A DNA stretch of 61,988 nucleotides, counting the filler, from Choristocarpus tenellus KU-1152 (taxonomy: Eukaryota; Protista; Phaeophyceae), in NCBI GenBank assembly GCA_964200185.2. It is 6 parts of 6 records of this genome, joined end to end, with 100 filler letters (N's around TTAATTAATTAA, not from the genome) between each part and the next. Parts side by side here need not be neighbours in the genome. Positions count along the whole stretch, not along the records: positions 9,031 to 34,534 come from CAXNAD020000187.1; 5 more parts are not named here. One strand, 5' to 3'. A program made the position numbers and the translations under genes. The notes beneath the pieces are model-generated. The model did not search any database and was not told the DNA's origin. It saw nothing but the letters and a program-made list of their open reading frames with translations. Positions 4,875-34,534 of the stretch are shown piece after piece (positions within the stretch are counted from its first letter, which is position 1; each line of letters starts with the position of its first letter).

Positions 4875-5555
4875 ATGGGTTACATGGTAGGGGTCATTCC
4901 CCTCCACCCTACAAGCTCCACCACAGAACAAGCCAACAATATCTCCCTGTGGACTCTGGAGAAGATCATGGAGGTGGAAGACTCGGCTAGGGTAGCTGAG
5001 TTCTTTGATGAGGTGTGTGAAAATAGGTCTCTTCGTCTAGAAGTACACACCAGCAAGTGCAGGTGCAAACGACCGCAAGTTTAGGAGGCCTAGACCCATC
5101 CTTGACGAGATACCACCAACAAGCAATTTTTCTGGGATTGATAGTGGCTACTCTCCCCACCTTTCTAGTCAGGCGACAACAAGCCCATGGAGAGGCTTTT
5201 ACCCAGGTAATTTATGGAAGTCCTACTACACAACCCCAATGATCCTTTATCTACGCCATTTCCTCATCAGGAGTCCCCTCGGCAGACCTGGTGGGATTGA
5301 TGGTCAAGGCTGTGTGGACTGGGCAGCACAACAGCTCCTGCTGTCGTTCCGGATGTCCACACTTTGGCAGGTCATGGTGACAGGATAATGAGGAGGGCAT
5401 ACATTAAATTACCTGTCCATAAAATAAACAGAACCCGTTTAGACTCATTTCAGATACAACTAGCAAACCTTCTTGTAGATGCAGAGGAACAGTGGAAGGA
5501 TAGTTCCTTGCTGACTCTAGCCTATCACTGGGGTCAGTGTAGGTAAGGGGCAACT

Positions 5556-5803
5556 GAGTAAAAGTATCTGAGAGGTCCGGGATTTTTCCCTGTTTGTCCA
5601 TTTGGGGCTTGGCTTGCCTTGGGGTTTTAATGACATTTTCCTACTCCAAAAATGTTTCGGAGTAGGTAAATGTATACGTTATGAAAAGGTGTTCAGAACA
5701 ATGATATTGACACTTCCTAACAAAGACGATAGCCAAAATTACGTCGAAATTGAAACATTGGATTTTGGCCCCCAAATGGACGAGGCTCTACCCTCTAAGA
5801 GTC
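5556..5803 (-). mobile_element. MITE family A, inverted copy
   Basis: Reverse complement of the family A sequence with a small deletion in one TIR; flanked by AACT / AACT. Confidence 0.85.
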
Positions 5804-5943
5804 AACTTTTCAGAGGAATGGGCATTCCTTGAACTACATGGACATGGCGTTCCATGCTGGGGTACTATGCACCTAACCCACTCATCAACCAGCAATGGTG
5901 TTGCTGCTGCAGTTCTGGAGCCATGAATACGCACCCACTATAT

Positions 5944-6126
5944 GACTCAAAGTATCTTGGGGGAGGTGGTGGCTGTCCATTCAGGGTCTATTTTTCCATG
6001 TCTTGATTTTTGGGTGATTTGATTGCATGTGTCAGATGGATAATATAATTGTACTTCTCCTGGTCAGGGCCCGAATGGACACCCTGGTATATACCCCCCC
6101 CATACACATAACAGATACTTTGAGCC
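5944..6126 (+). mobile_element. MITE family B (related termini, different interior)
   Basis: GACTCAAAGTATCT ... AGATACTTTGAGCC inverted ends; flanked by ATAT / ATAT; its left end recurs at 54545-54583. Confidence 0.75.
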
Positions 6127-8930
6127 ATATGGTGTATCTTTTGACCCTTGTAGTTTTAATTTCAACACCTTTTTTGCAGTGGAAACTGTTGGGTGGCTCG
6201 CTAGTCTATGTCCACCCACAACGTTGGGGGGACAGGGGGACAGTTGGGGGGACAGAGACTGGGATTTACTGTCAGAAAGCGGCAATTAAGAGTCCTTTGA
6301 GACATACAGTCTATCCATCACTCCACAAGGAGCTCTCTTGAACGCTTCACATGTTTAATGTAAGAGACACCGGACAAGGTGGGCATTAAAGGCCCTAACA
6401 GATTCCTGTTATTCTTCCCTTTCTCTTCACACAACTTCATAGGGCTAGGCCGGGGATATTGAAAATATTAACACCAGCCATAAATAATAGAGAGGATCTC
6501 CCTGCGTAGTTTGTTTTGGAATACTACGACGTATGAGTGTGTTTTTACCATCGACAAGAATTAATTGCATCCGAAGTTTTGGCGTTGTAGTTTGGTTTAC
6601 GTATTTTCCCTCTTATGACACATCTCTACAAAATAGTGGGCATAACATAATATACAATTCCAGGAATTTGGAAGTATAGGAGTGATGGACTCGGCGAGAC
6701 CCGCAATGTGAGAGAAACCAATAACTGTATGAAGTTTTGAAAAATTCCTCTACAGTCAATGGCATATACTTAAGACGACCTTTCATGCCAATCAGCGTGC
6801 GAAAATCGTCTTGTGGTGACATCTGGAGCAATTTGGACTAGTGACACGATAACCTGGTTTGTGTCTGTTTTGAAACCTCTAACGAGATATGTGCAATTGA
6901 TTGCTCGCGTCGTGCTTGTTGTGAGCAAATTGGATTGGTGAGACGACGATATAGTTTATAGCTATAATCTATTACTGTCCCTTACAATATTTGGCAGACG
7001 TATCATCATGGAAAAAATAACCCCTTACTTATATCTTAGAAGGACTACTTTAAATAGAGCACATAGTTGTAGTCAATGACACCTCTCTGACAATTTTTTG
7101 CTTTTTGATAACTACAGTAGTATGTGGTGATCCACCAACCACTCCGATCCACCCAAGCCTTCACAGGTCTCTTGTTTCCTCCCCCACTCCTTTACAGGTC
7201 TCTTGTTTCCTCCCCTCCTTTCAGGTCTCGAACACATAATATTAAAAATATAGTCAACCTGATAAGGGGGGGACTCCGATTTATTCTCTTGTTAAAAAGG
7301 GATGTGGTTGATTTTTCGCCTACTAAATTAAACATATATTCTACGTAGTACCTACAATTTGGTTCCTTCTTTCCAATTACATCAATATTCCCAGATTTTT
7401 TGGTGCCCGTTTCGACTCTTTTAGATTGGTCGTTTTGATTTAAAAAATCGGGACCGACCACATCTACGTTCATACTTACCTACTTGAAGGTCTCGATTGG
7501 TGAGTAGGGGCTAGGAACTACATAAGGATTCACTTCGGATCAAACATGATTGAGGGTTGTCAAAGTTTCCTTCCTCCTGTGTGCAGCCAGTTGAAGGTAT
7601 TTATTTTCAGGTCTCAGGTACATTTTATAATTTTCTTCGAGATACAGGTTAATCGCATCACCAAGATCCACCCCTCACAAACCTACCAGATGTAGTCTGA
7701 GTGGTAAAGGAAGAGAGCACTTGTGATCACGATGGGGTCTCATTTCCTCCAGCCAGCTACGAAATATTGAAACCGGGTGTAGCCGATCGAGAACAGTCTG
7801 TTCTTCTTTCGGTAGAAGAACCTCACGCCCCTCACCACAATGGGGGTTTGCCAACCATACTCCCATCGAAGTTGGGCATCACTACATCCCCTAGGCAATC
7901 AAAAGACGCTTCATATCTCCTTTTTGTATTTCGCAACTATTTGTTTCAGTTTGGGAAAGATAAGGGAGGCGGTTGACTAATTTTTGTGATTCAGGGTGGA
8001 GTGGACGTGTACGGTAGCCGCAATAGATACACTTCGCACTAGTGGATATGGGACTAGATAATTCCTTCCACCTGGACGCGTATCCCCTTTGTCTGCTACT
8101 CAGGCCGAAATCCTTTCTCGCTGCTGATGCATCTTTCTATCCTCACATAGTTTTCTTTACTCCCCTCCGAATCCTTTGATACCAGGATATGGAGCCCGCC
8201 AACTGTGCAGAGAGCTTGCCAATTGAAGCCACTGACGTGCCCCACGGCGACACCCATTACCTCACCATGGTGAGTCTATCAAGTCATATCACACGATAAC
8301 GCTGGTTGAGGATGTGATTGGCATTCGGAATTAGCTTCGGAGGTGGTAAACGAACTGGCGAGAGACATACCGTTTGACTTTTCCAAATATATGATAGTTG
8401 TATAGGCTAGGCATCTTTCATCATGCAGCTCCAACAAAAAATTAAAAACTTTCAGTATTCCACTCCACCCTTGCTAGTAGCAGCTACAAGTTGATGGGAA
8501 GGACACTTGCCCAAAATTGTTTTTGTGGTAGATCTCAACTTTTCCCTTTATCTCCTGCCTGTAAAGTATCTCTCATGTATCCACTAGGGAGATAAACTTT
8601 CTAAAAGTGGATATGTTCATTAACTCTAACTTGCAACAACCAGATGGGGTATCTTGTTACAAGATGGGACGGTTTATAACAAAACACTAGCTAATGTGCC
8701 CCACAAGTACTTACGTGTTGGCATTTGGAGGTGGGGAAACACGGTTTCTCACCTGGAAGTATACCATTAGCTATATACAATATTTGCGGTCAATGGCCAA
8801 CCCAGTAGACAAACTCTGTAGTAGTAGGAGTTGACAAAGGAGGGTAAAATTACTTCTTCGAGAAATTTGCTAGTTTGCTTCTGCCTTATTCCTGTCCTTG
8901 AGAATATCATCTTTGCGTGAAATATCAATG

Positions 8931-9404: not shown

Positions 9405-12400
9405 GTGCGCGAAATCGAGACCATAAGCCCCAGTCACCCAGAATTCTTCCGCCCACAAACTCAGATACTCCATAAACTCTCACTTCATCATTTGCCTCTT
9501 CTCCTGGATATAGGAGAGGATATTAAGGAGGGAATACGATACTACCCTGAACTACATATCGCTGTATCTACCTACCCCCTTCCCTACATATCCTGTGCCT
9601 TGAAGAGGAAAAGAACGAGTCTCTTTCTGTGCTGTTCTCCAGCCAAAAGTTTTTCCGTGCTGGAAATGGAGGTGAGCGTGTCATCTGATAAACACACACA
9701 TCCCTTTTTCAGACATTTGAAGATATAGGTGAAGCAATTCCTTATGAGTGAGCGATCGTCAATTTCATTTTTCTCGTCTCGGAGTCATTCTGGTGTACAA
9801 GAGATGCCCTTTGTAATACAGGCTCCACGCGAAACCATCCCATATCGTTGCCTCGAAAGTGTCACTGTCCCTGACCTAAACAGTTAGAATGTGTTTTTTC
9901 TTCATATCTCACACCAGTCAATGTCCCACCTTCACAATGGGTTAATAACAGGACTTTGAAGCTGTACGTGCCCTGGAAGACGATATCAAGCAGCAGCAGC
10001 TCATACTCCAAGCGAAAGAGAACTTGCTGATGTATCTGCATATTCACTTTGTGCGGAGATATCAGGACCAGTATGATGACTATCACTTTCAGCTCACTCA
10101 ACAACCAAACGACCTGGACTCGTTGAATTTTCGGACATTTTGTGATAAGGAGCTCCTACAGCCTCGCACCTGCGGATCCGTGGACGAGTATCTGAGAGAT
10201 GCACAAGAAGCTAAGCCAAAGTTGGAACGCATTGTGGATTTTATTGCAGCGCGTGTGTCGGCTGATGTGGTTAAGGCTCCGCTGAAGACAAAAGAGAGCA
10301 TTTTACGCAAGGCAAATATGCCTTGGGCGGGCGGCAACCTGCGCCTGGTCACAGATATGGCCAGGATTTCCGTCGTTTGTAAATCAGCGCAAGATCTGGG
10401 GCTTGTGGTGGACCTGGTGAACAGTACCGAGGTGAGTTTTTCCATAATTAAATAATTTTTCATAGGTCGACACTATCCTCTACCATAATGTTTAACAGAG
10501 GAGACTGAGGTATTATCTTCGCCCTCCTTCGCTATATTCTTAGGAGTTGCATGTGAAAAGAGTGAGCAGTGGATTCCGGTTCAGCTACACACCAGGAGGG
10601 TATCGGGATGTGAAAATGAACGTGGTCATCTCACAAGACCATGGTCCGGGGCACCTGTGCGAGGTCCAGCTACATCTGAAAGGTTTCTATGACCTCAAGG
10701 AAGAGTCACACAAAGTATATGAGTGGGCAAGAGAACTGAAGGTCACACATTCAATGGAGGCTTCTCATCTTTTCCGCAACTGGAGTAATGAGGTCACTGA
10801 GAAAATGATCCTTCTTGGGAAGGAGAACTGGTATGGACTGGGGAACACGTTGTCAGCAACACTGCACATGGCTGGAAGATACAAGGAATCAGTGGAGGAG
10901 TGGAAAAAGGTGTGGAAATTGAACTTGTCTTGTTACGAAATGCACAGTTTGGCTTGACTTAATGGTAACATGTGCTCCTGGTACCTTCTGTGCTCTTCCA
11001 GGTACACCAAACAAAACTTGATCAATGGGAGAAAGCCAAGACTTCAGGATCTGACATTCGAAGAGCTGTAATTGCTGTTGTAGAAACAGTCTGTAACATG
11101 GTTCCTTCAGTGATTGCACAAGTGAGGATGAAATGTTAGGTGTACAATATTGCTATGACAATGCATTCCTGCTTAGTCTTGACACTCATTGACATGTGTT
11201 ACAAGTTTGAAAACAACAGCATTAGGTATGTTTTGAAATGTGTAATATTGTGAGGGATCTTTGGGTGGCAAACCGTGCTGAGTTGAGTTTTTCTGTAACA
11301 AATGACTTCATTCATGTTAAGAACAAATGGTAAGGTTTCATATATTTGTAATTTAAAGGCAAATAATTGGCCTACGGTGACTCAATTGTTTCACATGTAA
11401 AAATGTTTTTGCCAGACAACTTAGTTGTTTTCAGTGAATCTTCCATGCCATACCTCCTTTGTGTCAGTACGGACGAGGCTAGAGTCGACCTCCATAGATC
11501 TGATGAAGTACAGTTTTGCTTCATACGATCTATTGATCAAAGCTTGTAATCATCAGCCCTGCGGAAATACATTCTCATGTAGAGATATATAGCGATGACT
11601 TCTGACCAAACTTCCAAACCTAGGCATTAGAAAACTTAACCCACACGGAGATACATCTGATTATTGCTTAATACCTCCTACCCACACTATATATTCTTCT
11701 TTGAATACCCATCGCCAGTCCCCAGCAGAAACTGTTGTGACCCTTCCAGGGTGTGTGCTGGAGGGATGATAATTGAAACTCCTTTACATCTAGTCTTCTA
11801 GGTATCAAATTTTATTTAAAAATAATTCCATGGCATTATGAGGATTGATGATTGCGATGCCTTTGTATGTCCTTTCGACATACCCATTAAAGCTTGCTCT
11901 GGGCCTTCAAGGGTGTGGTTAGTGTTAAGGCTAATGTAGATAAGGTGAACGCCACTGCAAAGCCGACCTCTAAATTAAACCCATCAACCTTTTCAAGATA
12001 AAGTGCTCTAACATTTCGAGGTTTTTGTAGATGATGTACTGTTCTTCCCCAGAGATTAAGATATCTTGCAATCAGGAAGAGATAGGCAAGAACGTTTTGA
12101 ACAAAACAAAGTTAATGACCTGTTAATGACCTGTGCCCTGATGCTACACGAGTTAAATGTACAGTTCACATAGTACAGTTTCTGTGGACAAGTAAAAGGT
12201 CTGAAGTAGATAGAATAGGTAGTGTTCCTTGGTCTGTTTTGTTGTAAAGCTTTGAAATCTGTATCTAGTTGTACATCACATAACGAGTTACCTCTTGAAA
12301 AAATATTGCACATTTTTTGTGTCACCAAAGATGTTGACAGTAGATTGCTTGAAGTTGTCGTTGTGAAAAATAGTTCTCAGGTAGATGCGTTGTCCATGAC

Positions 12401-14015
12401 AGCATGAATATTAGGGAGCGCATTAGTACAATGCATATTTCCAAAAGAAGACGGACAGCCCTACATCAACACGATTGTATATTCCCCATCAACTATATGC
12501 AGTAGAATATATCTAACAATTATCACCAATGCTCCAATTACAATTACGATCTACTAACATATCCCCAAACTTCCCCTTTTCTACATAGGGTAAATACGAT
12601 GAAGCTGCTAAATTGGTCACTACTTCAACCAAGATGACAGATGAAGTTAGCATTGGAGAGAGACATCCTTTATCTGCAATGATGACTCAACGTCATGGAG
12701 AGATACTGCATGAAATGGTTTGTGAAACTAATATTTATCATGCTGAGGTTTGACCTGACAATAGATGTAACGTTTGAACGACCTGACATAAAATAAACTT
12801 CCAGAAACTTACGGATGACATAGTTGGTCCACTAACATAAAAGCTTAATCTCTTTGATTATGCAGGGGAAACACGGTGAAGCTGAGACCCTCCTACGTAA
12901 GGTGATCAGAATGGGTGAAGAAACGTTGGGATCAAGTCACCCTAATGTGGCTGGCAGGAAGGGAAACTTGGCTTCGTTGCTTCAAGATCAGGTGAGAATG
13001 TGAATGGTTTGTAAATATTGTAAGTGTGGTTGAGGATGAGACACAAGAAGAGGGCATAACGATGAGATTTGCAGTAGGTGTATGGAGGCTGGGTGATGTA
13101 CGTCTGCATTTGTGGAATGGTTGTAGTGTGTGGATATCCAGTGTGAAACAGGCGTGTGTTGAAAGAAGGATGAAAGTACCTGTATTTGGTGAGTCACTGA
13201 GTCTGATTTGTATGATGCACTGACATGTGTTGCTTTTTGGCTTTAATAATGCAGGGTAAATATGCCGAGGCGGAGAAACTGTTTCACGAGGTGATAAGGA
13301 TTGTTGAAGAAACGTTGGGATCAAGTCACCCGCATGTGGCTACCGACAAGGGAAACTTGGCTTCGTTGCTTGAAGATCAGGTGAGAATGTGAATGGTTTG
13401 TATGTAAATATTGTAAGGGTGGTTGGGGATGAGACACAAGAAGAGGGCATAACGATGAGATTTGCAGTGGGTGTATGGAGGCTGGGTGATGTATGTTTGC
13501 ATTGGTTGAATGGTTGTAGTGTGTGGATATCTAGTGTGAAACAGGCGTGTGTTGAAATAAGGATGAAAGTACCTGTATTTGGTGAGTCACTGAGTCTGAT
13601 TTGTATGATGCACTGACATGTGTTGCTTTTTGGCTTTGATAATGCAGGGTAAATATGACGAGGCGGAGAAACTGTACCGTGAGGTGATAAGGATGGGTGA
13701 AGAAACATTGGGATCAAGTCACCCTAATGTTGCTGTTTGGATGAGAAACTTGACTGGTTTGCTTAAAGCTCAGGTGATAATGTGTATGGTTTGTATGTAA
13801 ATATTGTAAGGGTGGTTGGGGATGAGACACAAGAAGAGAGCATAACGATGAGATTTGCAGTAGGTGTATGGAGGCTTGCTGATGTACGTTTGCTTTAAAA
13901 GATGAGACTCATTATTTGGTGGATATTTTTAGATGTTGAAGGATGTTTACGTTATTAATGTCTACATTTAGTTTTCATTGTCTTTTTGGGCATACAGCAA
14001 GATGTCGAGAAATAA
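9405..14015 (+). CDS. Multi-exon gene: RelA/SpoT-synthetase-like nucleotidyltransferase domain plus C-terminal TPR repeats (5' end unresolved)
   Basis: In-frame phase-0 GT-AG exons 9952-10431, 10544-10909, 11002-11121, 12589-12717, 12866-12991, 13255-13380, 13648-13773, and a possible terminal exon 13998-14015 (QDVEK*). A possible upstream exon ends at 9671. Motifs PLKTKESILRKA, VTDMARISVV, GGYRDVKMNV and HLCEVQLH occur in the order of the RelA/SpoT synthetase motifs. Repeats such as GKYDEAEKLYREVIRMGEETLGSSHPNVA...NL..LL..Q are kinesin-light-chain-type 42-aa TPRs. Confidence 0.8.
12866..13895 (+). repeat. Tandem exon+intron array (~390-bp unit: 126-bp TPR exon plus ~265-bp intron), three exons plus a truncated third intron copy
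   Basis: Unit starts at 12866, 13255 and 13648; introns 12992-13254 and 13381-13647 are nearly identical; 13774-13895 is a truncated copy. Confidence 0.95.
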
Positions 14016-14379
14016 AGACATGGAGGCATCGGAAGGTTAAGAGGTGATTGTTTTGGTCGGGGTGGTATGGAGGTGACCTTCTCGGCTACTGTTGATATTT
14101 TTGAGTGGTGGACTTGAAAGGAGATGGGGTGTGTGTACCTATATAGTGGAGCACGTGACCTCAGGCACTATCTACTGTTGACACAAAGTAGATAGTGCCT
14201 GAGGTCACGGAGTGAATTTGTATTATCACCTTGACATTTTGCTGTTGCAGGCTTTTGGATTGGTTGAAATGTTGCTTTTCTTTCCTGCTTGATGTAAAAA
14301 ATTTCCCAAGTATAAATATTGTGTTATGTTTGAAGGTTGCGATAATCACATGCATGTGATGAATGAGTTAATGCTTTCT

Positions 14380-14690
14380 TCAATAGAAATTTGCTCTCAG
14401 GCTTACCTTTGCCCTTTTCTTGCCACCAAGGAGAATGTTCTGAGACTTGAGATCTCCATGTACAATCTTATTGGCGTGTATGCACTTCATGCCTCTTACC
14501 ACATCCAAGATTATCCTTTTCCTATCATCTGTAATAGACCCAGACTCCCAATACGATTCATTTTTGAGGAATGTTCTTAAGTTTTCACCTGGTAAAAATC
14601 TGTCACAATGACATGCTCCCATTTCCAATAATCAACAATCATGAGGCAGATAAACGTAAGGAAGACTGAAAGTCAAAACTTCGGACCCTG
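14380..14690 (-). pseudogene. Isolated, inverted paralogous exon of a TKL protein kinase
   Basis: FLPGENLRTFL...ILDVVRGMKCIHANKIVHGDLKSQNILLGGKKRAK matches exon 26607-26813, including flanking intron sequence (GTTGATTATTGGAAAT upstream, GTAAGCCTGAGAGCAA downstream). The acceptor region is altered and no other intact kinase exons were seen nearby. Confidence 0.8.
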
Positions 14691-15237: not shown

Positions 15238-15410
15238 GTGACCAACCAGTGCGAACCCCCTTCGCCACTGATTTTCTGTCACAGCCCATCTCCGATGACG
15301 AACCAGTGCCAACCCCACTTCGCCCCTGATTTGCAGTCATCACCCCCCACATCTGATGACAAACCAGTGCGACCCCTTCGCCACTGATTTCCAGTCACCA
15401 CCCCACCCTT
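15238..15410. repeat. Degenerate ~60-bp minisatellite (about 3 units) followed by C-rich low-complexity DNA
   Basis: Recurring GAC(C/G/A)AACCAGTGC...CTTCGCC(A/C)CTGATTT...CA. Confidence 0.75.
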
Positions 15411-17418
15411 CAACCCCACCCAACCCCACACCACTTACCACTGCAACACATCAATTCAACACCACTCCTCCCCACAACACGTTCCACCACTTTCCACTTC
15501 CCCACAACATTCAACATCACTCAACCCCCAAACACTTTTCACCACTTTCCGCTTCCCCACACCGGTCAACACCACTCCACAATCATCCTAGAACACCCCT
15601 TCATCATCCACTTCATACTGTGCCTTTGAACTAGAAGGCATCTACCTCGCCCGAACTGGACCTCCCCCCCTTACCCAGAAACCCAGTTGGCCATGAACAA
15701 CCGAAAGGGTGGTGGGTGGGAGAGATTGCTCAGAAGTTGTCTTCTTCTAGCCCTGCTTGTCCTGTACTACTGACCTCAGGTTTTCCTTACGTTCTGACCA
15801 TTCCTTCCTACCTCGTTCTTCCATCTACCACCCATTTCTTTTAACTTCTCTCCTACCACTTCTGCCTCCTAGCCACTCCGTACTTTACCCTTTTTCCATC
15901 CTTCTTTGCTGTCTTTCTTATTCCATATTCAACCCACCCTTCCCTAAAGTCATTCTTACCAGAATTCTCCCGTCTGCAAAACTCAGATTACTTCATAAAC
16001 TTCCATTGTTCATGTCCATTTTCAGAATGTGCATTCTATAGCTGAGAAAGGTTAGGTTAGGGTTAGTACTCCAGTAATTGATATAGACGTATCATCTTTA
16101 ATTATGTGTTTGTTCAATACATAGATCTTCCCAACACATTTCCATCAATTTGGCAACACTTTTGAATGAACGATACCTATGATTCATACGAATCTTTACC
16201 CTATACACACAATCCAACAAGATTTCCTGACCCAAGCTTTGACTAACAAACAATTTCCAAATATATGTGAGAGCCATCTTCCAAAGAAGGTGTACCATTA
16301 AGGTAACCTATCTTGAAGACTGATATTCATACGACATTTTTTTTTGCATGTTGAAGGTAACATCTGTTTGAAATAAATAGCGAATGGTATGACGGGACCT
16401 TACAAACCCCCCTCATTCGCTTTCCACTTACTCTTCTTTCCTGAGTAATCGAATAATGGTTTACTCATGAATACTAAAATATAATTATCAAGGCAAATTA
16501 TAATGCTTTTCCAAGACATCCCTACCTTCTTACCAGGAAAATACTTCCCGCCTCCCCCCTCCCCCCGTTCTCACAAGAGTCCCTACCTGGAGTCTGGCTC
16601 TTCTTGTCTCTCTCCTTATTCTACTCTTTCCCTTCTGCAAATACACATTTATGGTTATCGGACAAATATTTGGTTTGCTTGTCAAAAGGTCACCACATGG
16701 TTTACATATTCTCCATCATCATTTGTTTTGTGTTATGAATCATATTATATATATTGTGTTATGAAAAAATATATTGTTTTACATTATGATCAAGATATCC
16801 AATTCATAGACATACAAATGGAGAAGTAATATTCTCTTTATACGGCAATTTTCATTAATTTGTTTCTGGATCCCAAGATGATCTTCTGAGGGATTGCTTT
16901 TTTTTTGTCGTCTCTTTTCATTTTCTTGCCTCTTATGGGTCTTTCAGATTCCCTTTAGTCTAAGGAACCTATCGGATAGTTATTTGGTTTTTCCTCTCAC
17001 ACATCTCCAGAATGTCCGAGGGCTAAATAATATAATTATACCTGGAGTACAGGGATCAGTTTGTATAGAATACCAAAAACGTCTACTCTCTATATACATG
17101 AAGTGTTTAGGGAGTTTGAAGAATTGAAATATTATTTTCCTGTACCATTTTTTCCGTCTTTCCCCTCAATCACGAATTTTTCACCATACCTACCAACTCA
17201 CTCATCGATAGATGACGATAGATGATAGATGATTATCACGTACCAAAGGGGTACAGTCAACAAGTAGATTCTACATAAATTGCATTTATTGGTGTCCTGG
17301 GGCGTGTGGTTGTTCTTGTTCACAGGCGATCATGGAGACGGCGACTAGCAGGTTGGAATCATCTCAGAGGGCAGGTGGGTTGTTTTGATGGTGTTTCAGG
17401 TCATAGGTTGAGAAGAAA

Positions 17419-20400
17419 ATGGCAAATAGAGAACAGGAACTGATGAATTTGGTATCGCGTTTGTCGCTTGTTGCCCTTCACTTCTCGATGACAGCCAAGC
17501 AACGGGAGATTCTTCTCGATTTCTATGCCTCCACGAATGGAGGTTCATGGAACAACAAAACGGGCTGGAACTCCAATGCCGATAACCTGGCAACGTGGTA
17601 CGGGGTAAGAGTCGACGATCAAGGATGGGTGATTGAAATTAACCTTCGCGAGAATAACCTCAAAGGTGAGATTTGACTGTCATGTTTCACATTCCAAATT
17701 TATAAGGTACATGTCCATTTCGAGACTGCTCCTACGAGGGTTGGCTTCATACTTGCGATGTTTCTATGAAAAGGCACAATTGTGTTGACTCGCTCATTGA
17801 GCTAGTGTACAGATGTGAATAATCAAGGAGAGCCAAAGTATGTTAGAGGTTAGAGCCACGCCCATTTGGGGGCAAGAATCCAATGTTGCGATTTGGATGT
17901 AATTTTGGCTATCGTGTTTGTTGGGAAGTGTCAGTATCCTTGTTCCGGACATACCTCTTCATAACGTATGCATTTTACCTACTCTAAAACAATTTGGAGT
18001 AGGAAAGTGTCATAAAAAAACCTATGGGAAGCCAAGCCCCAAATGGATAAACAGGGCAAAACTCGTACCCTCTAAGATACTTTCAATCAGGACTTCCCAC
18101 TGGACATATGTGCATGTGTGTTGACTCATTGACCAGTGTCTGTGACGCTACAACCACATAGTATTGGTCCAGGATTTTTCCTCCTTAGTGATCGTAAGAA
18201 GGGATGCCGTATGTGTACATTACGTGGCACTTGACTTTTGTTATTTTTGAAGGTCACTGATGCAGCGTGTGCTAGCATCGCCAAACCCGTTTAGTAGGTG
18301 ACAACAAATGGATTTATGAGGCGACGCGAGCCCTCTTCTTCTAAGGTTTAACCTGTGAGATATTTTTGTAGGGGAGATGGAACAAAAGCTGTATTGTAAG
18401 GTCTGTTGTAGTGGAGTAGAAAAAACTGTACAACTAAGCAGTGTCAAATCTGAAATATCTGCACCTTTTTGTTGTTGTGATGTGTTTGGCATCTACCTCT
18501 GGAAAACGACCTTCAGGCTTTCATGTATGTTTTAGGTTTTTCGTGTTGTAAGTGGTGACTACGAAGTATCTCGACTAAAATATTCTTGAGCAGTATGTTT
18601 TGGGCAGAATGTGCACTAACGATAAATTGATGTCCCTATTTTCATCTTGTTTATTGTTATGTGAGGTAATAATAAGTAAAATATGTTGCGTATGTACTAC
18701 ATATTCCATGAAAGATATTTTGGATAAATCTTTCTTTTTATGTCTTGGGGTTAGCTAAACTCTCCGAAGAAAAACCTTTTTACTCTGGAAGTTGGGTAAT
18801 CACATTCTATTATTGCTCAGAGATAGCAAAGTATCATTATTATGTTTCTATTCATTAAAATGTATTAATATGAATTCCCAAAGTCCGAAGTCATAGGACA
18901 AAATAGGAAACAAGAAACATGAACATTTTTCAAATCGAAACTTGCCTGAAACAACTCCAGCCCGGGCATTCTTAGCGACCCTTGTGCACTTGCTCCTCTT
19001 TTCATAGATGGCAAACTCTCTTCTCATGCTTGTGTGCGCGGCAAAGATGACGTGTAAGACTTTTTGTTTCCCTGTTTGCCCTTTGCCAACCGCGCACCGT
19101 ATTACTCTTTTTTTTTTTCACTTTCTGTTCTCTACCCCCTTCCCCCTGAGGCTACACCATACCCTGGCACTCTGTGTTGGGGCCTTCAATAATCTCTGTG
19201 ATTCTAAAGGACTTGATGAGTAGAGGCACATTGATATTTTGTCTTTTTTTATTCCCAATGACATTTACAACATTGCGCTTTTTAGCAGGTCCAGGTACCT
19301 CCCGGTGATTCATAGACATAGAGAACTGATGCCCCTCAAGGTATCGTCCGTAGATGTGCCAAACTCAACACTCTGCACAGTTAGGGTTAGATGTGATGGA
19401 CGGAGTAGTCAACCTAGCCTGTTCTAGGCGTCCTCTTGATGCATGCCTGCCGGTGTTGATAACACTATTATTATCACTACTAGTAATGCTGCTACCCCTG
19501 TCTCTACAATCGTCGCTACCTCTATCCCTCTCACTGGCATTTTCATTACTTCCAGTATCTTTGCCTTTGCTCATTGCAACCAAATTGTCTGTACTCAAAG
19601 TCTACTTACCAAGGATGAAAGTTTGTGTTCACTGAACTTCGGGTTATCACATTTCGTACAGGAGTTGATGAGTGATGATCATAACGAGTGGATTGTGAAA
19701 GTGAGGCATTGCCACACCAAAACTACAAATCTCCTCAGGCACCCAATAGTATAGTTACATTTATTTTTAAATTTTAATATTTTCAACAATATAACAGAAA
19801 TTTGTATCATCGTAGTCCTCCACCTGAGGCGTAGGCAGTGATGTTGCTGTTCATATTATGTTTGGTGCTTATAGTAGTAGTGTAGGATACAGGATAAAAG
19901 TAGAGAAAAATAGGTGGAATGGCCATAGTGTGGTTGGACTGAGTGTAAAATATAAGGTACCTGACCAGTCATAGGTATAATGTTCAAACATAGACAAGTC
20001 CATGACTATACCTCACTGAACACGACATGGGCAGCTGGCTGGCCATATTTGACCAAGTTCAATCATGAATGAATCCATGTCCATCAGTTGTTTCGACATA
20101 TGACTGCTGATTGGCCTGTGGCCGTATAGCTGACAGTGGGGATGCTAAGTTCCTGATTCGATGATAAACCAATACTGTGTTCCTCTATCAAGTTGAAACG
20201 ACTTTTTGCGGCAATATCTATTTTATTTCATTTTACAAGTTGACTTTTAAGATGTTAATGGTCAATGCTGTTAACATAGCATGAAGTGTACTGAATATGT
20301 AAATTAGTGATGAGTGTCAAGGAGAATATAAATACATTTTGTGTATGCTCTAAAGGTACTTCAACCATCTTTGTGAAAAGGGTATGATGATCTTGTGTAT

Positions 20401-23400
20401 TTAAAGCACTTATTGATCTCTGATGTGAAATCAGTTTGTAGTCACTCTTGTCTGTAAAAGGAGTGATATCAAATCATCAGTACATGACTTCTTGATTCGT
20501 ACAATGTATCTGAAGAAATGTCAATTTTCCAATAGGGTGAATAATACAATTTGTAAGAGGAGTTCTGGTTAATATTTCTTGTGCAGAATATATTTTTTGA
20601 CGATCTAGAATTGCTGACAGGAGAGTGTTTGATGTACTGCGCATGAGTATTGTTGTCTACCTCAAGCTGATGTTTGTACTGGACAAGAGTCTAGAAATGT
20701 TAAGTGGGGTTTTATTAATCACTACACCATAGTTCAGCAACTATTTTGTATGTGCTAGCTCCACTATTTTTCATAACCTTGCCTATGGCGTTGTTGTACA
20801 TAGGTTGAGTCAGCATGTTTAGTCAGTCTGAGCATAGAATGTACTTGATAATTTGTGATTGTAAGAACAGAAGTGTTGTGTTGATGATAATATCCTTTGT
20901 CACTCCACTTTCGTCAAAATGTTGTTTTGTGCATTGTGAAACCTGAATGGCGTTCACAACTGAACTTTGTCCCTCACAGGGACTGTCCCCGAAGCATTGG
21001 GCGACCTGCCCGCCCTGCGGCAACTAGATTTGTCCTTCAATCAGCTCAGTGGTAAGTCTGAACTTGTTGATTTCTTTCATTTTGAAGGAATCTCTTTTTT
21101 GTTGACTTTCCTGTTGAAGTACCCTAATGTTGTTGAAAATGTTGATTTTCCATCTGTACCTTAAAAATGTTTGACTGGTGCAATATAGAAATGATTCAAT
21201 CCCATTTTTTTTCACTAATAGAGCTGCATCATTCTGCTTGGTTTCATGTTGATTAGTTTCAACATCAGAAGTTTTGACAGGAGAGTGTTTGATGTACTGC
21301 ACATCACACTTGTTGTCTACCTCCAGGTGATGTTTGTATTGGACAAGAGTCTAGACATTTTGATTGGGGTTATATTACTCACAGCACCATAGTTAAGCAC
21401 GTTCTTTGTTTTGTGCTAGCACTATTTTTCACGACCTTGTGTATGGCATTGTTGTAAATAGGTTGAGCCAGCATTTTTATAGTCAGTCTGAGCATAGATG
21501 GCAATTGAGAATTTGCGATTGTAAGAACAGAAGTATTTTTTTTCTGTATTCTTTGCCACAGGATATTTGACTGTTTTTTTTGTGTACTTTTTGTTTTGAA
21601 TGTATTTTGTAACTAACGTTTTTCCTCACACGGTCTAATTATCAAATTAGCAAGCATCCTATCTTGTTCTTTGAGTTTTCTGTAGTTTGCTTAGTTATCT
21701 CTTGGAAATTTTTATGTTTGTAAGTGTTATTTTTATTTTGTAGGCCAATTTTATATGTATATATATAGTGGTGAGTTACCTTCTTTTGTGCAGTACTTTG
21801 TCAATACGTAGAATACTTTCTTCTTATTGGTATAGTCCATTAAATATTTTTTATCTCAATGTATGGTTAACTTTCGTTATAGGATGGTGTGCTTCCTACT
21901 TGTTTGTATGTGTAGTCACTTTCTGATAGTGCCTTCATTGAACTCCCAATGTCTGTTCCTAACCCTAACCCTAACCCTAACCCTAAGCAATTCCCTCTTA
22001 TTGTTTTGAATACTGTTATCCTAATGTGTAGATGTACATGTATGATACTAACGAAGAAATCTCTCAAGACCTTTTTTGTTCTCAATAAACATGATAGTGT
22101 TTCTCTTCTATCCATTTTGTTCAGGATAATTAACTCTAGCCCCATCTTTCTGGATCCTTATGTTTGGTGTTGCCAGTGGTATGTTTGCCACATGGATACC
22201 AATTTTCCTTAGTGTCCTTTTGTGATTGTATCAACTTGCTTCTAGTTGAAGAATAGTATTCAATTGGGAACTCTGTGGTCTGTACTATTTATAACCAGTT
22301 CCACTGTGTTCTTTTTTCCAGAAAAGCAAATGCTGTCGCTTGTCATCCTAGGGTCCTTATCTCTTAAAAAATATGGTGTTTAATCTGCTGGTGTAATTTT
22401 CCAGGTGTGCTTGTGGAGGGTGAGACTCTTGTATTGAGAGAGGGTCCTTTTCTGCTGGTCATCCACAATGATGATGTGAAGAAGTTTCGCATAGAGTGCA
22501 GCAAGGTGTTGTCTGAATTGGAGAATCTTACGCAAGATTGTTCCTCATCTGTTTCCGAGTCAGTGAAACAATTGGTCACTTTTGTAAAGGGGCACGTGCT
22601 GCGTACAATGGAAACGGATGAAGATGTGGGTGCTGTCCTGTCTTGGTGTAACAGTTCAAATGCAACGTATGTTTTTCTGATTTATTTGATCTTACGTATT
22701 TGTCAAACAATAGTTTGATGATACAAATTGTGATAGTGGTTGGATGAGAAAAATCATGTGAATGCTCGTAGAGATTGAAATGCTACAAGTTCATCAGTTG
22801 TGAATTGTTTGATATGGAATTTTTGTATTTGAGAATGCACAGATCGAGATATTATTTTGAGATTAAAGCATATTTGGTACATTAAATTAGGTTGCACTTA
22901 CTTGCAGTTGAGGTATTTATTTTTTCTGTGGAGATTGTGTCATTGTCTGTCTTCAGTCAAGAAGTACGATTTTTGTGAGTGTGCTTTGATCTCTTTTGTA
23001 ATTAGGCAAAAGTTGATATTTATACTTTACATGTAGTTGGACATTTTTTTAAAACCCTTGATCTGATATCATAAGTGTATCCCTAACCCTGCACATGCTC
23101 TATCTGTCCAATTTTTAATAATGCTTTGAATTAGGGTATTGATATGTGTCTATTATGTACAACTGTTTACATTATTTTTTTATTGTGATTCAGCATCATG
23201 TAAATAGATTTTTTTATTTTGTTGTTGTGCTGACATAGTAAAAGAAAAATCAAGGGTGGGCCTCACCGAGGTTTTTTAATGCTTAGCCATGAATTTGTTC
23301 AGGGTACAATGTTATGATCCTATAAATGAAGCACGTCTTAAGATAGAGGTGAGGGTGAAGCTTTTGAGAATGGATCCGAAGGTTTTCCAGAGGTCACCAT

Positions 23401-26400: not shown

Positions 26401-29400
26401 TGTTAGGTGTATGTGGACTGACATTGTGGATGCTGCTGAAGTAGCTTGACCTCTTTTTTATGATGTATACTTAATTCATAAAGTATGTTGTACACATGTA
26501 TGTTTTGTTTTAGGGCTACGGTTTGATAATGCCTTTGGCGAAGTATTAATACTCAGACTTTCTTACACATCTCTGCCTCTTGGTTGTTGATTATTGGAAA
26601 TAACAGTTGATTATTGTGATGGAGTTTTTGCCAGGTGGGAACTTGCGAACTTTGCTCGATAAGGGTTTGTGGGAGCCCTGGTCTATTACAGGAGTTCAGG
26701 AGGGGTTAGTCCTGGATGTGGTTGCAGGCATGAAACACATACACGCTAACGGGGTCAAGCATGGAGATGTCAAGTCTCCTAACATTCTCCTGGATGGGAA
26801 CCGAAGGGCGAAGGTAAGCCTGAGAGCAATGTGTATGGAAGGAAAAATTGATTGGGGTAATATATTTATTATTATTTGTTACTCCTACACATACAAATGT
26901 TACTATTTCAATTGGATAAACATCTGCAGTACCATGAGAGGTCAGCCTGTGGCCCAGTCTGGTTACAATCTTTATGATCATGGTTTGGTTCTTCTAAAAT
27001 ATATGGCCCATACTGGCCTTCAACCTTGTCTTTCCTTTATAACTTCAGTACTACTACAGCTCCGGTCTGGTTATTTGAAGACATCCTATATGTGATTCCG
27101 TCAGTGGCCTGGTCTAGTTATACTCTCCGATAGCACTGAATCGTTCAAGTTGAGGAAATTTGTTTTTCATACTTTTGTGACTCCATTAAGAATCGAACAT
27201 ACACTCTTTGGTGAACATTAGAATTGAAGAGTCCCTTTCCAATATAGCATAGTCAAGTGTTTGTATAATCTAACAAATGTACTTTTTTTAATGATTATTA
27301 TCGAGTTGTGAACATTCAATACCCTCTGACCATGTTAAAAGAAAAAGTTTACCAGGCCAGACTGTAGTCATGTGTAGTCTCAATCTAAATATCATCGACT
27401 TTGCGCTATTGAGACATTTGGCATAGGTCGTACACTAGTCTGATCTGGTTGTTCTTTCTCCTTGGACTGACTCCTTAGAAACTCAGTTTACCTGGGTAGC
27501 CCCTGTGCCCATTCCTTTTGTGTGTACTAAGTGAGGTGGAAAGTCCTGGATGAGTCAAGGTTGGATACAGGTTGGAAGATCCACTCTATATTCGTTGTGT
27601 CTATACTTGAGAATATGAGTGATGAATATCAATTTTAATGAAAATATATTTTTTCCTGTTCTTGTGCTTCGGTAGTTCAAACCCTAACCCTAAAACAACC
27701 ACATATGTAGGGTGGCATTACAGACTTTGTGAACCACTACTGAAATGCAGTTTTTCGAAAACATACGCCCAATCCCAACACTACCCATAACCATACACCA
27801 AAGTGTGTATGAAAAATATCCCTATCTACTTGAGGAAACAATCTGTAGCAGTATAGTGTTCACTGGGGAACTAACACCTCTCAAGGATATACCACGTTTC
27901 ACTTTTTCGCACACATTTTTTGAAAACCTAGCCCTAACCCTAACCCTGACCTGTGTGTGAAGAATAACGGTAAGCTTTATTTGAAGGAGTGAACCAAATT
28001 TGACAGGGGTGTTTTCCCAAAGACGGGGTTCTCCACTATGCACTTCAACATGTAGTCGTTTTGTGGTGGATGCCTGTTGTATCCAGTTAATGTAGACAGA
28101 GGCGAAGTTGGAACTGATGCGAAGAGTTTGGACTAGACCCTAACCCTAACCCTGCAAGAGGATCTGTATGAAAATGAAAAAAACTGATATGAAAACATAT
28201 TTTCCTTTTAAATACATAACCTTAGAATGTTACCTTTCTAGGAGCTTTCATTTGTTCAAAAAAAAAATCCATACTCTCATTTTCTCTTCCACATGGATAT
28301 TTTTGAGTGGAATACCTCTATTCCTTTTTTGATAACGCAAATCAAAGATAAGTTGGAGCATTGATACTCCCTCTGTTCCTAAGTTTGCAACATTAAGAGT
28401 TTTTACCTCTAGCTTTGGCTGTTTCTTCACGAATATGAAGTCTTCTCTACAAGTGGTGTGGCTCAAGATTAAGGTCTGGTTTTCAGTGGCTGCACTGCGC
28501 CCTGCAGTGGGTACAATGCCCCCCCTTTGTCACGCAACATCTCTGCACCTCCCTCGCCAAGAGCCTTACGAATCTCGTTTAGCCTCCAGACCATCTGTGA
28601 TGCAAGTTCAGTAGCAGCAGGGAATTGCATCAATCACAGAAGCGGCCTCAACAGTATTCATATCAGCAAAACATGGTTACACCTTATCTGCAACAGATAA
28701 CGTGTCCAAATGTTCCCCAGGGATGAAGGGTGGGCTCCACCAATGTACAGGACGATGAGGCGTTTGGCGCACAGATCCTTCCCGTGATACAACGGCAAAT
28801 CGTAATATGGCGTGTTTGTGTCATCCAGCGGGCGCACAGAATTTCACCCAGCCACGAGAGGGGGCAGTAGTACGACTTCAATGTGAACATAAATAATGTG
28901 AACATCGATGCGGAGTGGTAATGGGAGTGGTAAGTGAAGACTTTTCTCCCTGTATTGAAGAACCAACGTTGTGGTTGTAGGGTGAGGAGGTGGCTGTGCA
29001 GCAGGATGGAGCAACCCTAACCCTATGTGAAAAGACGCACCGTGGAAGCTCAACAAAGTCGGGAGAGAGGGGGGTTTGAACGTGAAGCTGGTGATACAGC
29101 CTGCGCGGTCATTTGATTTCAATATCAACAATTTAGGTTTCTGAAGAGTAGAGTTTGGAGGGAGTGTTATGGTGCGATAAATGACCTTGTGAAGGAGGTA
29201 AAGAGTAAAGAGCATCTACATACAAGTACAACGCAGCTACTTTGGAGAGGATGTGGCAGAACCTCTTGAAGCGTAACAATCTAGTTTTGAAGGCGCTAGG
29301 GGGTATTTATTTCGAACAGCCAGCATGAGGGAAGTCGCTGAAATTGGTCAGAATCGATAGAGGGGCTTTCGATTTGGCAGTGGATTGGTGGATTGGTTGG

Positions 29401-30641
29401 CATAAGGAAGGGACAAAGAATGATTTTCACGTACACACATGAAGGACATCAATATAAAAAAAAACCATTTTTAGTGTAGGTCATCTGGAGAAGTTACACC
29501 ATTATCGTCACAGACTACCCGGCTATTATGTTGTTACCATCTCCTTTTGTGTGTCCATTGGGAGGTTCAAGCAGGGATTACAATTTCTTCTTGTGCTTGA
29601 ATTTCAACTGGAGACATGAATTAATTTAAAGATATTTGTGAACTCTTTTCACGAAAAAAAATGTATTTTTTTGTGGTGATTTTTTCTTCTTCACTCTTTT
29701 TATTCTCTTTATAATATTCTGATTGTTAGATTTGTCTTGGTGAAAGAATGGTAAGATGAGAAAACGAGAGATCTGAGGTCAAGGTCTTACCTTCTACCGT
29801 GTCTTTTTAATGGGAATATTCGGAGATTGTGCAGTGAAGGTGCATCATCGTAGACTATTGGTCGTGAACTATGTAGTTTTTGTTGTTTTAAAGATAGGTA
29901 GTAGTGTGAGACATTGTAATGATCTATTGCATTAACTTTTACTTGAAGTCCTATTTTATGCTCCATGTGGAAACTTGTATTTTTCTTTTTCAGACCTGTG
30001 GCCTTTATTCATGACATGTCGTTGATGCTCACTTCTTTGTGTTGTCAAACGGATGTTTCCTGTTATTAACCTTGCAGGTGGCAGACTTTGGACTTGCACA
30101 GGTTGTAAAGATCACCAAGAGCAGTAAGTTGGAGGAGGCAGGAGGGGGTTCTGCACCATGGGCAGCTCCAGAAGTGTTAGATTGTAACCAAAACAGCAGA
30201 GCGAGTGATGTTTACAGGTAGAGTGAGAAGAGTGTAGAGCCATTTTTACATCTGTTAGAAGAAAAGGGTTGCAAGTGATCTTGCTGTCCTGGAACTATTC
30301 CTTACAGGCATGATAGATGAACTCTGCTTGCCCTTCACTTCCAGTTGTCCGTTTTGGAGAAGTTGTAGGATTCTGTGCAACGCTTACCCTGCTAATCAGC
30401 TAGTCCTTCATTGCATGCTCGTAAACACAGCTTTGGCATTGTGTTGTGGGAGATACTCACCCTGGAGAAGCCTTGGGATGGCAAGGAAGTCGAGGCAATT
30501 TGGTGTCAGGTATGTCTGAAAGAACAGCGCCCTCCACTGCCTACAGCTTCGTCTACAAATTCACGTTTCAAGAAAATTATCTCGAAGTGCTGGGCGCAGG
30601 ACCGGAGGGACCGGCCTACATTTGAGGTGTTGGAGGACCAG
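17419..30641 (+). CDS. Probable multi-exon LRR - helical region - TKL-family protein kinase gene (middle exons and 3' end unresolved)
   Basis: Exon 17419-17665 is an LRR N-cap (LLDFYASTNGGSWNNKTGW...ATWYGVRVDDQGWVIEINLRENNLK). 20980-21051 is a 72-bp LRR exon (GTVPEALGDLPALRQLDLSFNQLSG). 22405-22666 joins in frame. Kinase exons: 25262-25381, 25683-25760 (IGRGGFAK), 26203-26388 (AVAK), 26607-26813 (HGDVKSPNILL), 30078-30217 (VADFG...WAAPE...SDVY), 30431-~30641 (SFGIVLWE...CW...RPTF). The kinase part is secure; continuity through 22666-25262 is not. Confidence 0.7.
17830..18088 (+). mobile_element. MITE family A in the first intron of the LRR-kinase gene
   Basis: Family A sequence and TIRs; flanked by AGGA / AGGA. 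Confidence 0.9.
20608..21534 (+). repeat. Pair of ~265-bp direct repeats (about 20608-20873 and 21269-21534) flanking the single LRR exon
   Basis: Both run from TGACAGGAGAGTGTTTGATGTACTGC through GGACAAGAGTCTAGA to GATTGTAAGAACAGAAGT. Confidence 0.9.
21958..21985. repeat. Interstitial telomere-like (CCCTAA)n tract
   Basis: CCTAACCCTAACCCTAACCCTAACCCTA; shorter tracts near 16050, 24807, 26108, 27925, 28137 and 55822. Confidence 0.85.
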
Positions 30642-33600: not shown

Positions 33601-33794
33601 ATCAATTATATTCTGCGAATGGCTAATCTAACTAATCACAGATTACTTCCCAAAATGCTTCCTATTCCTGAACCCTTCCATATTCTAGTTGTTGAAACCC
33701 AACCGTATCTTCAATTCTTCAGAACACAAATATTGTTTGTTCATCCTTACCTTGTTTCTCAGAGGCTTCTTTGACACATGAATAAAAAGCATAT

Positions 33795-34052
33795 GAGCCA
33801 AAGTATCTTAGAGGGTAGGGCCTTGTCCATTTGGGGTCAAAATCCAATGTTGTGATTTGATGTAATTTTGGCTATCGTGTTTGCTGGGAAGTGTCAATAT
33901 CCTTGTTCCGGACACACCTTTTCATGACTTACACATTTTACCTACTCAGAAACATTTTGGATTAGGAAAATGTCAGAAAAATACGCCATGGGAAGTCAAG
34001 CCCCAAATGGACAAACAGGGCAAAACTCGTACCCTATGAAATACTTTCACTC
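33795..34052 (+). mobile_element. MITE family A
   Basis: Family A sequence and TIRs; flanks ATAT / TATT (TSD imperfect). Confidence 0.88.
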
Positions 34053-34534
34053 TATTCTTAACATGAGTACTTCATACATGTTCGCAATAGCTAACAAGCG
34101 TGTTAAAATAAGCCTCATAATATTGTGATACAACTGTTGACCAAGGCACCAATCTCACACGACTGTGTTACTTCATGTATCTTGTCGTGATACCTATATA
34201 GCTATAGCTAGGATGAGTCACCTTTCCTCTCTCTCTTCCTCCCTAATAATTAAGTACAACCCCACCAAACTAAGATTTCTTAGTTGGTAATCCACCTGAA
34301 GAAAAAAGACCCATAAATAATAATAGGAGTAATTACAAGACCATAGCAAAAAGACTAGGATAGATAGGGTTTACACAAGCTTGAGCAAGAGAACGTACTC
34401 CCATCCGGAACAGTGCGGTTTTATGTCCTCGGTACTCCACAGTATAGAGAACAAAATAGCACACCATTTTGGGTCAAACTCATCCTCCATAGTATGCTCC
34501 ATCCTCGATTTTGAGCCTTCTTCAATAAGGGTTG

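Follow-up and report, generated by a model that had tools for sequence, protein, structure and literature searches.

The window considered here is a stretch of 61,988 nucleotides of DNA from Choristocarpus tenellus, a brown alga of early divergence whose genome assembly comprises 164 Mb in 27,310 contigs. One of these contigs, named C187 here, carries an expressed gene that ends in a short tandem array of exons and introns, each exon encoding one tetratricopeptide repeat (TPR). The present analysis deals with the structure of this gene, with the uneven divergence of the units of its array and with the processes that could account for it.

The gene lies on the plus strand (+). In exon 1 (10024..10431) the frame is open from 10024, and the first ATG occurs at 10030. 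This exon codes for the first half of a putative RelA/SpoT-homologue (RSH) domain and is joined to exon 2 (10544..10909) in a spliced contig (10431->10544). Exon 2, bordered by GT..AG on both sides, encodes the second half of this RSH-like domain (GGYRDVK ... CEVQLH), then the start of a TPR-like helix pair. It is followed by exon 3 (11002..11121; 40 codons; GT..AG joints 10909/11002 and 11121/12589) and by exon 4 (12589..12717; 43 codons; joints 11121/12589 and 12717/12866), a degenerate TPR-like exon that starts with GKYDEA and has been kept in a paralogue carried by contig C2257.

The array itself comprises three TPR exons of 126 nt in phase 0, named W1 (12866..12991; Pfam TPR_10, 1.4e-7), W2 (13255..13380; Pfam TPR_10, 2.9e-8; aligned without gaps to the TPR repeats of the kinesin light chain KLC1) and W3 (13648..13773). 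Tandem Repeats Finder detects a 393-bp repeat present in 2.5 copies at 12900-13893, which leaves the 5' 34 nt of W1 outside of the tandem repeat. W3 has a framework nearly identical to that of exons from a second array described below, but its patch is unique. Comparisons of codons and of segment divergence delimit in each exon a hypervariable patch (codons 27-37), which reads NVAGRKGNLAS in W1 (12944..12976), HVATDKGNLAS in W2 (13333..13365) and NVAVWMRNLTG in W3 (13726..13758). Alignment and RNA joints define two full copies of a repeat intron, one of 263 nt (12992..13254), G+T-rich with 9% C, and one of 267 nt (13381..13647). A third copy is cut off after 122 nt (13774..13895) and marks the end of the array; the second array ends likewise.

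Each of the three exons alone exceeds the Pfam TPR_10 cut-off (31.8-34.9 bits vs 27.5), and none needs a gap to align with the 42-residue repeats of kinesin light chains (E=1e-18 to 1e-22 with KLC1/2 chains). W1, W2 and W3 all show one 42-residue TPR per 126-nt phase-0 exon, with the register GKYxEA...Q. In the contigs of one public run, each intron predicted from exon 1 through W3 is spliced out at a GT..AG joint, so the gene is transcribed and spliced as predicted. A W1-to-W3 exon-skipping joint was also seen; it rests on sides of 26-33 nt and on a single distinguishing base, and it is not relied on here. In three public runs (X1-X3) over 13645-13774, a transcript end after W3 joins a sequence that is absent from the window, and a search of the window for this loose end found none.

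A search for the NB-ARC domain (PF00931) gave no match on C187, while it gave matches on C301, C11065, C1147 and C10630; the RNA joints leave no space in the C187 gene for an additional domain. Other contigs of the genome, C301 and C1147, do carry canonical NB-ARC-TPR genes.

The N-terminal 260 residues are instead predicted to be an RSH domain resembling toxic small alarmone synthetases (toxSAS). Exon 1 matches the Pfam family RelA_SpoT with 14.8 bits (E=0.036), below the 27-bit cut-off, and a Pfam scan of full-length homologues gave no match in this N-terminal domain. The assignment comes from other comparisons. Exon 1 matches the PDB entry of Tas1 with E=3.5e-4 and a profile of 14 homologues does so with E=5e-9. 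Furthermore, the AlphaFold2 model of a homologue from Pylaiella (pLDDT 88) retrieves with Foldseek, as top matches, RSH synthetases (Tas1, small alarmone synthetases, RelSeq, CapRel, and FaRel2), all with a probability of 1.0. The family-invariant residues G-Y-R-D-x-K and E-x-Q are found in exon 2. In a comparison with PDB chains, residues 13-60 of exon 1 (10060-10200) also matched type III polyketide (chalcone) synthases at their N-terminus (E=2.6e-4). This match was not retained; it is unconfirmed, is not reproduced by the family profile and may be due to chance.

Relatives of the exon 2 domain form 142 cluster representatives, and the six that were looked up all belong to brown algae. TPR_10/12 arrays, with up to 12 matched stretches, occur in 8 of the 10 family representatives scanned, and those of Ectocarpus and Pylaiella are likewise built from 126-bp exons. 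Among the papers searched, none was found to describe this brown-alga RSH-TPR gene family.

A genome search with the repeat intron gave matches only on C187, C3537 and C19753, and this limited distribution led to rejection of the idea that the intron is a dispersed element. C19753 carries one truncated exon. Identity between C3537 and the window amounts to 95-98% from 10508 to the end of intron 3, then to 84-92% as far as the array; C3537 is devoid of exon 1 and its array counts six units (P1-P6), versus three on C187. Two of its exons bear a TAA codon and one donor site is changed from GT to AT, but these dead exons are transcribed. This variant, which is either a paralogue or a divergent haplotype, has a contig depth of 23 vs 91 in run X1 and is absent from X2.

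Divergence along the repeat unit

The two full introns were originally described as about 96% identical, and their alignment (12992-13254 vs 13381-13647) indeed contains 253 matched and 10 mismatched positions plus one 4-bp indel (96.2%). In the same way, 25 of 126 nt are substituted between the exons at 13255-13380 and 13648-13773; 14 amino acids change and only 3 codon changes are purely synonymous. The whole-codon swaps ACC/GTT, GAC/TGG and TCG/GGT and the GRKG/TDKG/VWMR cluster are all present. The other pairs of window exons differ at 27 and 29 of 126 nt, so that identity among W1, W2 and W3 is 77-80%. For W1 and W2, the contrast between exon (27/126) and intron (10/263) is highly significant (Fisher P=1e-7). 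The statement that exons are about five times more divergent than introns holds approximately in the window, where the ratio averages ~4; the mean for the other pairs is ~2, and over the 36 unit pairs of the two arrays the ratio ranges from 0.9 to 5.6.

The alignment of the nine units of both arrays (W for the window, P for C3537) and the calculation of pairwise divergence by segment indicate where this excess is located. Divergence is 0.054-0.092 in introns, 0.067-0.095 in codons 13-26 and 0.044-0.111 in codons 38-42. By contrast, it reaches 0.30-0.32 in codons 27-37, which form a 33-nt patch where TPR helix A begins, and this in W-W, P-P and W-P comparisons alike. Codons 1-12 give 0.12-0.32, the upper end of this range being due to W1, whose 5' part differs by 36-44% from every other unit; its first 34 nt lie beyond the tandem repeat (which starts at 12900). 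Part of TPR helix B is also variable. The exon excess is located in codons 27-37 (~0.30) and codons 1-12, the rest of the exon being at the level of the intron. Counts of variable sites lead to the same picture, with 23/33 in the patch vs 31/114 in the intron (P=2e-5), while the framework (12/57) does not differ significantly from the intron. The clustering after HPxVA, proposed from the window exons, is supported; it falls at the start of TPR helix A and consists mostly of amino-acid changes.

The unique introns that flank the array diverge by 5-16% between the two loci, which indicates that the repeat introns are at a nearly neutral level and are not unusually conserved. Within this background, change is confined to the patch, which evolves faster than all its surroundings. 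For example, W3 and P2 differ at 12 of 33 patch sites vs 3 of 93 other exon sites (P=5e-6). The contrast between exon and intron is thus the signature of repeats that are conserved overall and display a few hypervariable positions.

It could be argued that the patches are ancient cassettes that have merely been retained while the remainder of the unit was homogenised, nothing being fast-evolving. The equal patch divergence (~0.30) within and between arrays, as well as a synonymous divergence of the patch (0.20-0.26) higher than that of the intron, would fit this proposal. However, the closest counterparts of the three window patches in the other array show 7, 8 and 10 differences out of 33 vs ~3 expected (P=0.035-0.001). 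No patch is common to both arrays within neutral distance though their frameworks are only 2-5% apart, which argues against simple retention. Joined to a ratio of nonsynonymous to synonymous differences (pN/pS) of at least 1 in the patch, versus 0.3-0.55 in the framework, this makes ancient cassettes an improbable explanation.

Another concern is that multi-mapping reads could have homogenised the introns, or collapsed the array, during assembly or polishing. The assembly is fragmented, the summed contig depth on the array is 7-25 times that of its flanks, and the public runs X1-X3 contain patch variants that are missing from the assembly (HPEVATRKG, HPDLAASKG, and TNKGNFA). Nevertheless, the introns retain 3-10% differences together with six sites fixed differently between the two arrays, and both the W1-W2 and W2-W3 junctions are backed by spliced contigs of an independent run. 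The exon framework behaves like the intron, as biology also predicts. An artefact as the source of the pattern is thus considered very improbable.

Other arrays were used as controls. In the C301 gene (NB-ARC plus 15 TPR exons) and in an array of Ectocarpus fasciculatus, exons are 50-79% identical and introns align barely or not at all. Units of intermediate Ectocarpus arrays are 65-78% identical, and the introns of the Ectocarpus and Pylaiella homologues are decayed. The young three-exon array of C1147 diverges by 5.6% in exons vs 3.1% in introns. The decayed introns of the older arrays (C301, Ectocarpus, and Pylaiella) led us to reject the idea that the reversed exon/intron pattern is a general trait of brown-alga TPR genes; it is a property of this young array. 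The C1147 array itself (5325-6487 of that contig) belongs to an NB-ARC-TPR gene and has three TPR exons that are 93-95% identical, the third bearing a TGA at codon 30, a codon that is also among the positions differing between the first two exons.

Processes acting on the unit and its patch

The location of the variable positions can be compared with the peptide contacts of KLC1, which involve register positions 3, 17, 30, 33, 34, 37, 38, 40 and 41 (PMC6214655). The most variable positions in the window family are 27, 4, 31, 30, 6, 36, 17, 10, 32, 37 and 40, and they include the contact positions 17, 30, 37 and 40. Among 40 homologous exons of Ectocarpus and Pylaiella, the top variable positions are 40, 30, 31, 37, 17, 27 and 41, and the KLC1 contact positions are enriched for variability (P=0.006). 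The targeted change of binding-surface residues put forward in the original prediction is thus backed as regards the positions concerned, while in the window family itself the enrichment is weak and does not reach significance (P=0.087). By analogy with kinesin light chains, the proposal appears right in placing diversification at residues that are likely to bind a ligand.

Strong diversifying selection had also been proposed. For whole exons, the pN/pS ratio calculated by the Nei-Gojobori method is 0.44 in the window array, 0.81 in the C3537 array and 0.65 for all units taken together; framework codons give 0.3-0.55 and the patch 1.2-1.8. Nonsynonymous patch events, which are minimum counts like the other patch events, amount to 22 vs 7.7 expected from the intron rate, a 2.8-fold excess (P=2e-5). 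The excess is thus real, clustered and mostly amino-acid-changing, but ratios of 0.44-0.81 over the whole exon and of only 1.2-1.8 in the patch fall short of the claim: dN/dS does not prove strong positive selection.

These values also bear on the simplest selective explanation, i.e., a recent duplication in which introns act as a neutral clock and the exon excess results wholly from positive selection of point mutations in binding residues. It accounts well for a nonsynonymous change of the patch that is 3.8-5.9 times the intron divergence, as well as for the concentration of differences between W3 and P2 in the patch. We nevertheless consider it unlikely. The patch pN/pS is about 1.1-1.8 and both synonymous and third-position variation are raised as well, while the 5' excess of W1 stems from sequence beyond the repeat unit. 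Furthermore, mosaic relationships reveal exchange between units, which means that introns are no simple clock.

This mosaicism is visible in the way nearest neighbours shift along the unit. For example, divergence between the introns of P1 and P5 is 0.7% over the 3' half and 11% over the 5' half, and the first 36 nt of P3 and P6 are identical. Under the four-gamete criterion (Rm), the whole unit must have undergone no fewer than 9 exchanges or parallel changes, and the introns no fewer than 2. The introns had been thought to be homogenised as recombination handles, an idea attributed to work on Ectocarpus. This view is not borne out, as the repeat introns diverge like the exon framework and like the unique flanking introns; they seem to be carried along in a homogenised unit rather than to serve as dedicated handles. 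Neither is the idea found in the Ectocarpus paper, which does not compare intron and exon divergence and whose authors state that they did not investigate the mechanism (Zambounis et al. 2012, PMC3341825).

The repeat introns have nonetheless an unusual composition, with 8-9% C, 33% G and 32-33% T, vs 17-19% C and 18-19% G in the unique introns of the gene. Two other roles were considered for them and rejected. Antisense coding is suggested by an open frame, but this frame results from the 8-9% sense C and about 6 of 10 substitutions between copies change its residues. A structured intronic RNA has no Rfam match, and the predicted fold is no better than that of shuffled sequences (z=+1.3).

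The strong G-richness and C-poverty of the introns would also suit a block replacement of the patch, either by templated conversion over short tracts, with diverged TPR exons (for instance those of the stop-bearing second array) as the reservoir, or by a local mutational process, in the germline or, more speculatively, in somatic cells. Such replacement would explain codon swaps that alter all three positions, the sharp edges of the hot region, the existence of a second array with dead but transcribed exons and the additional patch variants of the public runs. However, a search of the whole assembly found no donor cassettes for the W2 and W3 patches, the best matches being 80-87% identical and lying within the family. 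There is no evidence of variation within an individual, and published work on brown algae reports no somatic recombinants. Block replacement is therefore unlikely.

A bolder version of the same proposal would be a programmed diversification module in which the G-rich, C-poor introns, as substrates for recombination or R-loops, direct block replacement or hypermutation of the patch, at a somatic or a high germline rate, with the stop-bearing six-unit array serving as cassette reservoir. If true, it would provide a brown alga with an anticipatory receptor repertoire coupled to an RSH effector (nucleotide signal or toxin), but we regard it as extremely improbable.

The explanation that we favour, and that seems reasonably probable, is the concerted evolution of a 393-bp exon-intron unit combined with diversification of ligand-facing residues. 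The last three exons and their introns form a young tandem repeat at the 3' end of the expressed gene. Recent duplication of the unit, together with unequal crossing-over or gene conversion, would keep the whole unit alike, intron and structural codons included. A few helix-B codons and the patch with which helix A begins change several times faster, probably because new ligand-facing residues are favoured or tolerated and because homogenisation of the patch is selected against. In such a protein, the patch could bind a ligand and the gene could fulfil an immune-type sensing role.

It should be emphasized that several observations weigh against this combination of concerted evolution and diversification, besides the weak contact-position enrichment in the window family. 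The core positions 6, 32 and 36 vary too, partly in the stop-bearing array. Patch events comprise 22 nonsynonymous vs 6 synonymous changes, i.e., an omega of ~1.1 that is not distinguishable from 1, and the 11 third positions of the patch likewise show a raised rate, with 9 events. Synonymous events across the exon number 15-21 vs 8.6 expected from introns (1.7 to 2.4-fold). The six-unit array lacks exon 1 and bears stop codons, yet its diversity equals that of the expressed array. A PHI-like test of distance-dependent incompatibility was not significant (P=0.31). Finally, because the public runs hold extra patch variants and the depth on the arrays is high, these arrays may be incompletely assembled.

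Sequences flanking the array

Several features lie in the vicinity of the array. At 13969-14115, adjoining the array end, the summed contig depth of the public runs is ~12,000, compared with ~90 in flanking sequence, and loose ends occur at both borders; this segment is a high-copy dispersed element. Just 3' of the array, 14154-14209 is a perfect 23-bp inverted repeat with a 10-nt loop, which gives miRNA-like Rfam matches on both strands, all sub-threshold. Fragments of protein-kinase exons occur at 14380-14628 (-), 26607-27095 (+) and 30411-30785 (+), with a Pfam Pkinase match of E=2e-9 for the minus-strand piece, and their sequences suggest that a kinase gene cluster lies beside the TPR gene.

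Further along, C-rich tandem repeats with periods of 58, 55 and 30 nt are found at 15239-15577, where the regional GC skew is -0.5, and an interstitial telomere-like TTAGGG tract, (CCTAAC) x 4.8, at 21958-21986. A dispersed repeat of ~260 bp (83-84% identity) is present at 17830-18089 and 33794-34065. Other copies lie 5' of the C3537 array and next to the orphan exon of C19753.

Comparison with known systems

The hypervariable-patch pattern is already known from fast-evolving recognition proteins; it is the type of gene that is new. The nearest parallel in brown algae is given by the NB-ARC-TPR genes of Ectocarpus, which have 126-nt TPR exons, dead exons and exon-number differences between recent duplicates, and for which diversifying selection was suggested (Zambounis et al. 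2012, PMC3341825). The C. tenellus gene likewise belongs to a brown alga, and each of its 126-nt exons W1 to W3 carries a single 42-residue TPR in the same GKYxEA...Q register. Inactivated exons on the coding strand (stops and lost splice sites) occur in the related array of C3537, and exon number differs between the two loci. In contrast, it is devoid of NB-ARC and its N-terminus is RelA/SpoT-like, while the Ectocarpus paper defines no hypervariable patch for TPR exons. The known range of brown-alga receptor arrays with one repeat per exon is thus extended to a species of early divergence and to a family of genes that lack NB-ARC.

With kinesin light chains (PDB 3NF1, 6FUZ, and 3ZFW), the 42-residue unit aligns without gaps, with E ~1e-22 over several repeats. 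However, the conserved L32 and N33 of their LNNLA motif are replaced by K/M/Q and G/R in the C. tenellus family.

The repeats of fungal NOD-like receptors (NLRs) have reportedly been studied by Paoletti in 2007, Chevanne in 2010 and Dyrka in 2014. The WD, ANK and TPR repeats of these receptors undergo concerted evolution, vary in number and display a few hypervariable positions on their concave binding face; their TPRs are kinesin-light-chain-like and RelA_SpoT is among their N-terminal effector domains (PMC4986451). The C. tenellus array resembles them by the identity of its units when only the framework is considered (90-96%), by its variation in unit number (3 vs 6) and by a similar pattern of positions. 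On the other hand, fungal repeats lie in a single exon and are adjacent to a NOD, whereas those of C. tenellus are separate exons whose introns are homogenised with the unit, in a gene without NOD. Moreover, whole-exon identity (77-80%) is lower than in the fungal class (>85% repeat identity). The array is small and young enough for the intron to be used as an internal yardstick, and change is limited to an 11-codon patch, at positions that contact the ligand in kinesin light chain. This 1-kb array thus offers a compact test case for the long-standing speculation on rapid or somatic diversification of receptors in brown algae.

As for the N-terminal domain, its predicted fold and motifs are those of Tas1, CapRel and FaRel2. 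The likeness to CapRel may extend to the logic of the protein, in which an RSH effector is followed by a variable recognition domain at the C-terminus. Unlike the bacterial toxic small alarmone synthetases, the C. tenellus protein is eukaryotic and its putative sensor is a TPR array. By analogy, the RSH-TPR architecture suggests a eukaryotic counterpart of the bacterial defence proteins in which an alarmone synthetase is fused to a sensor.

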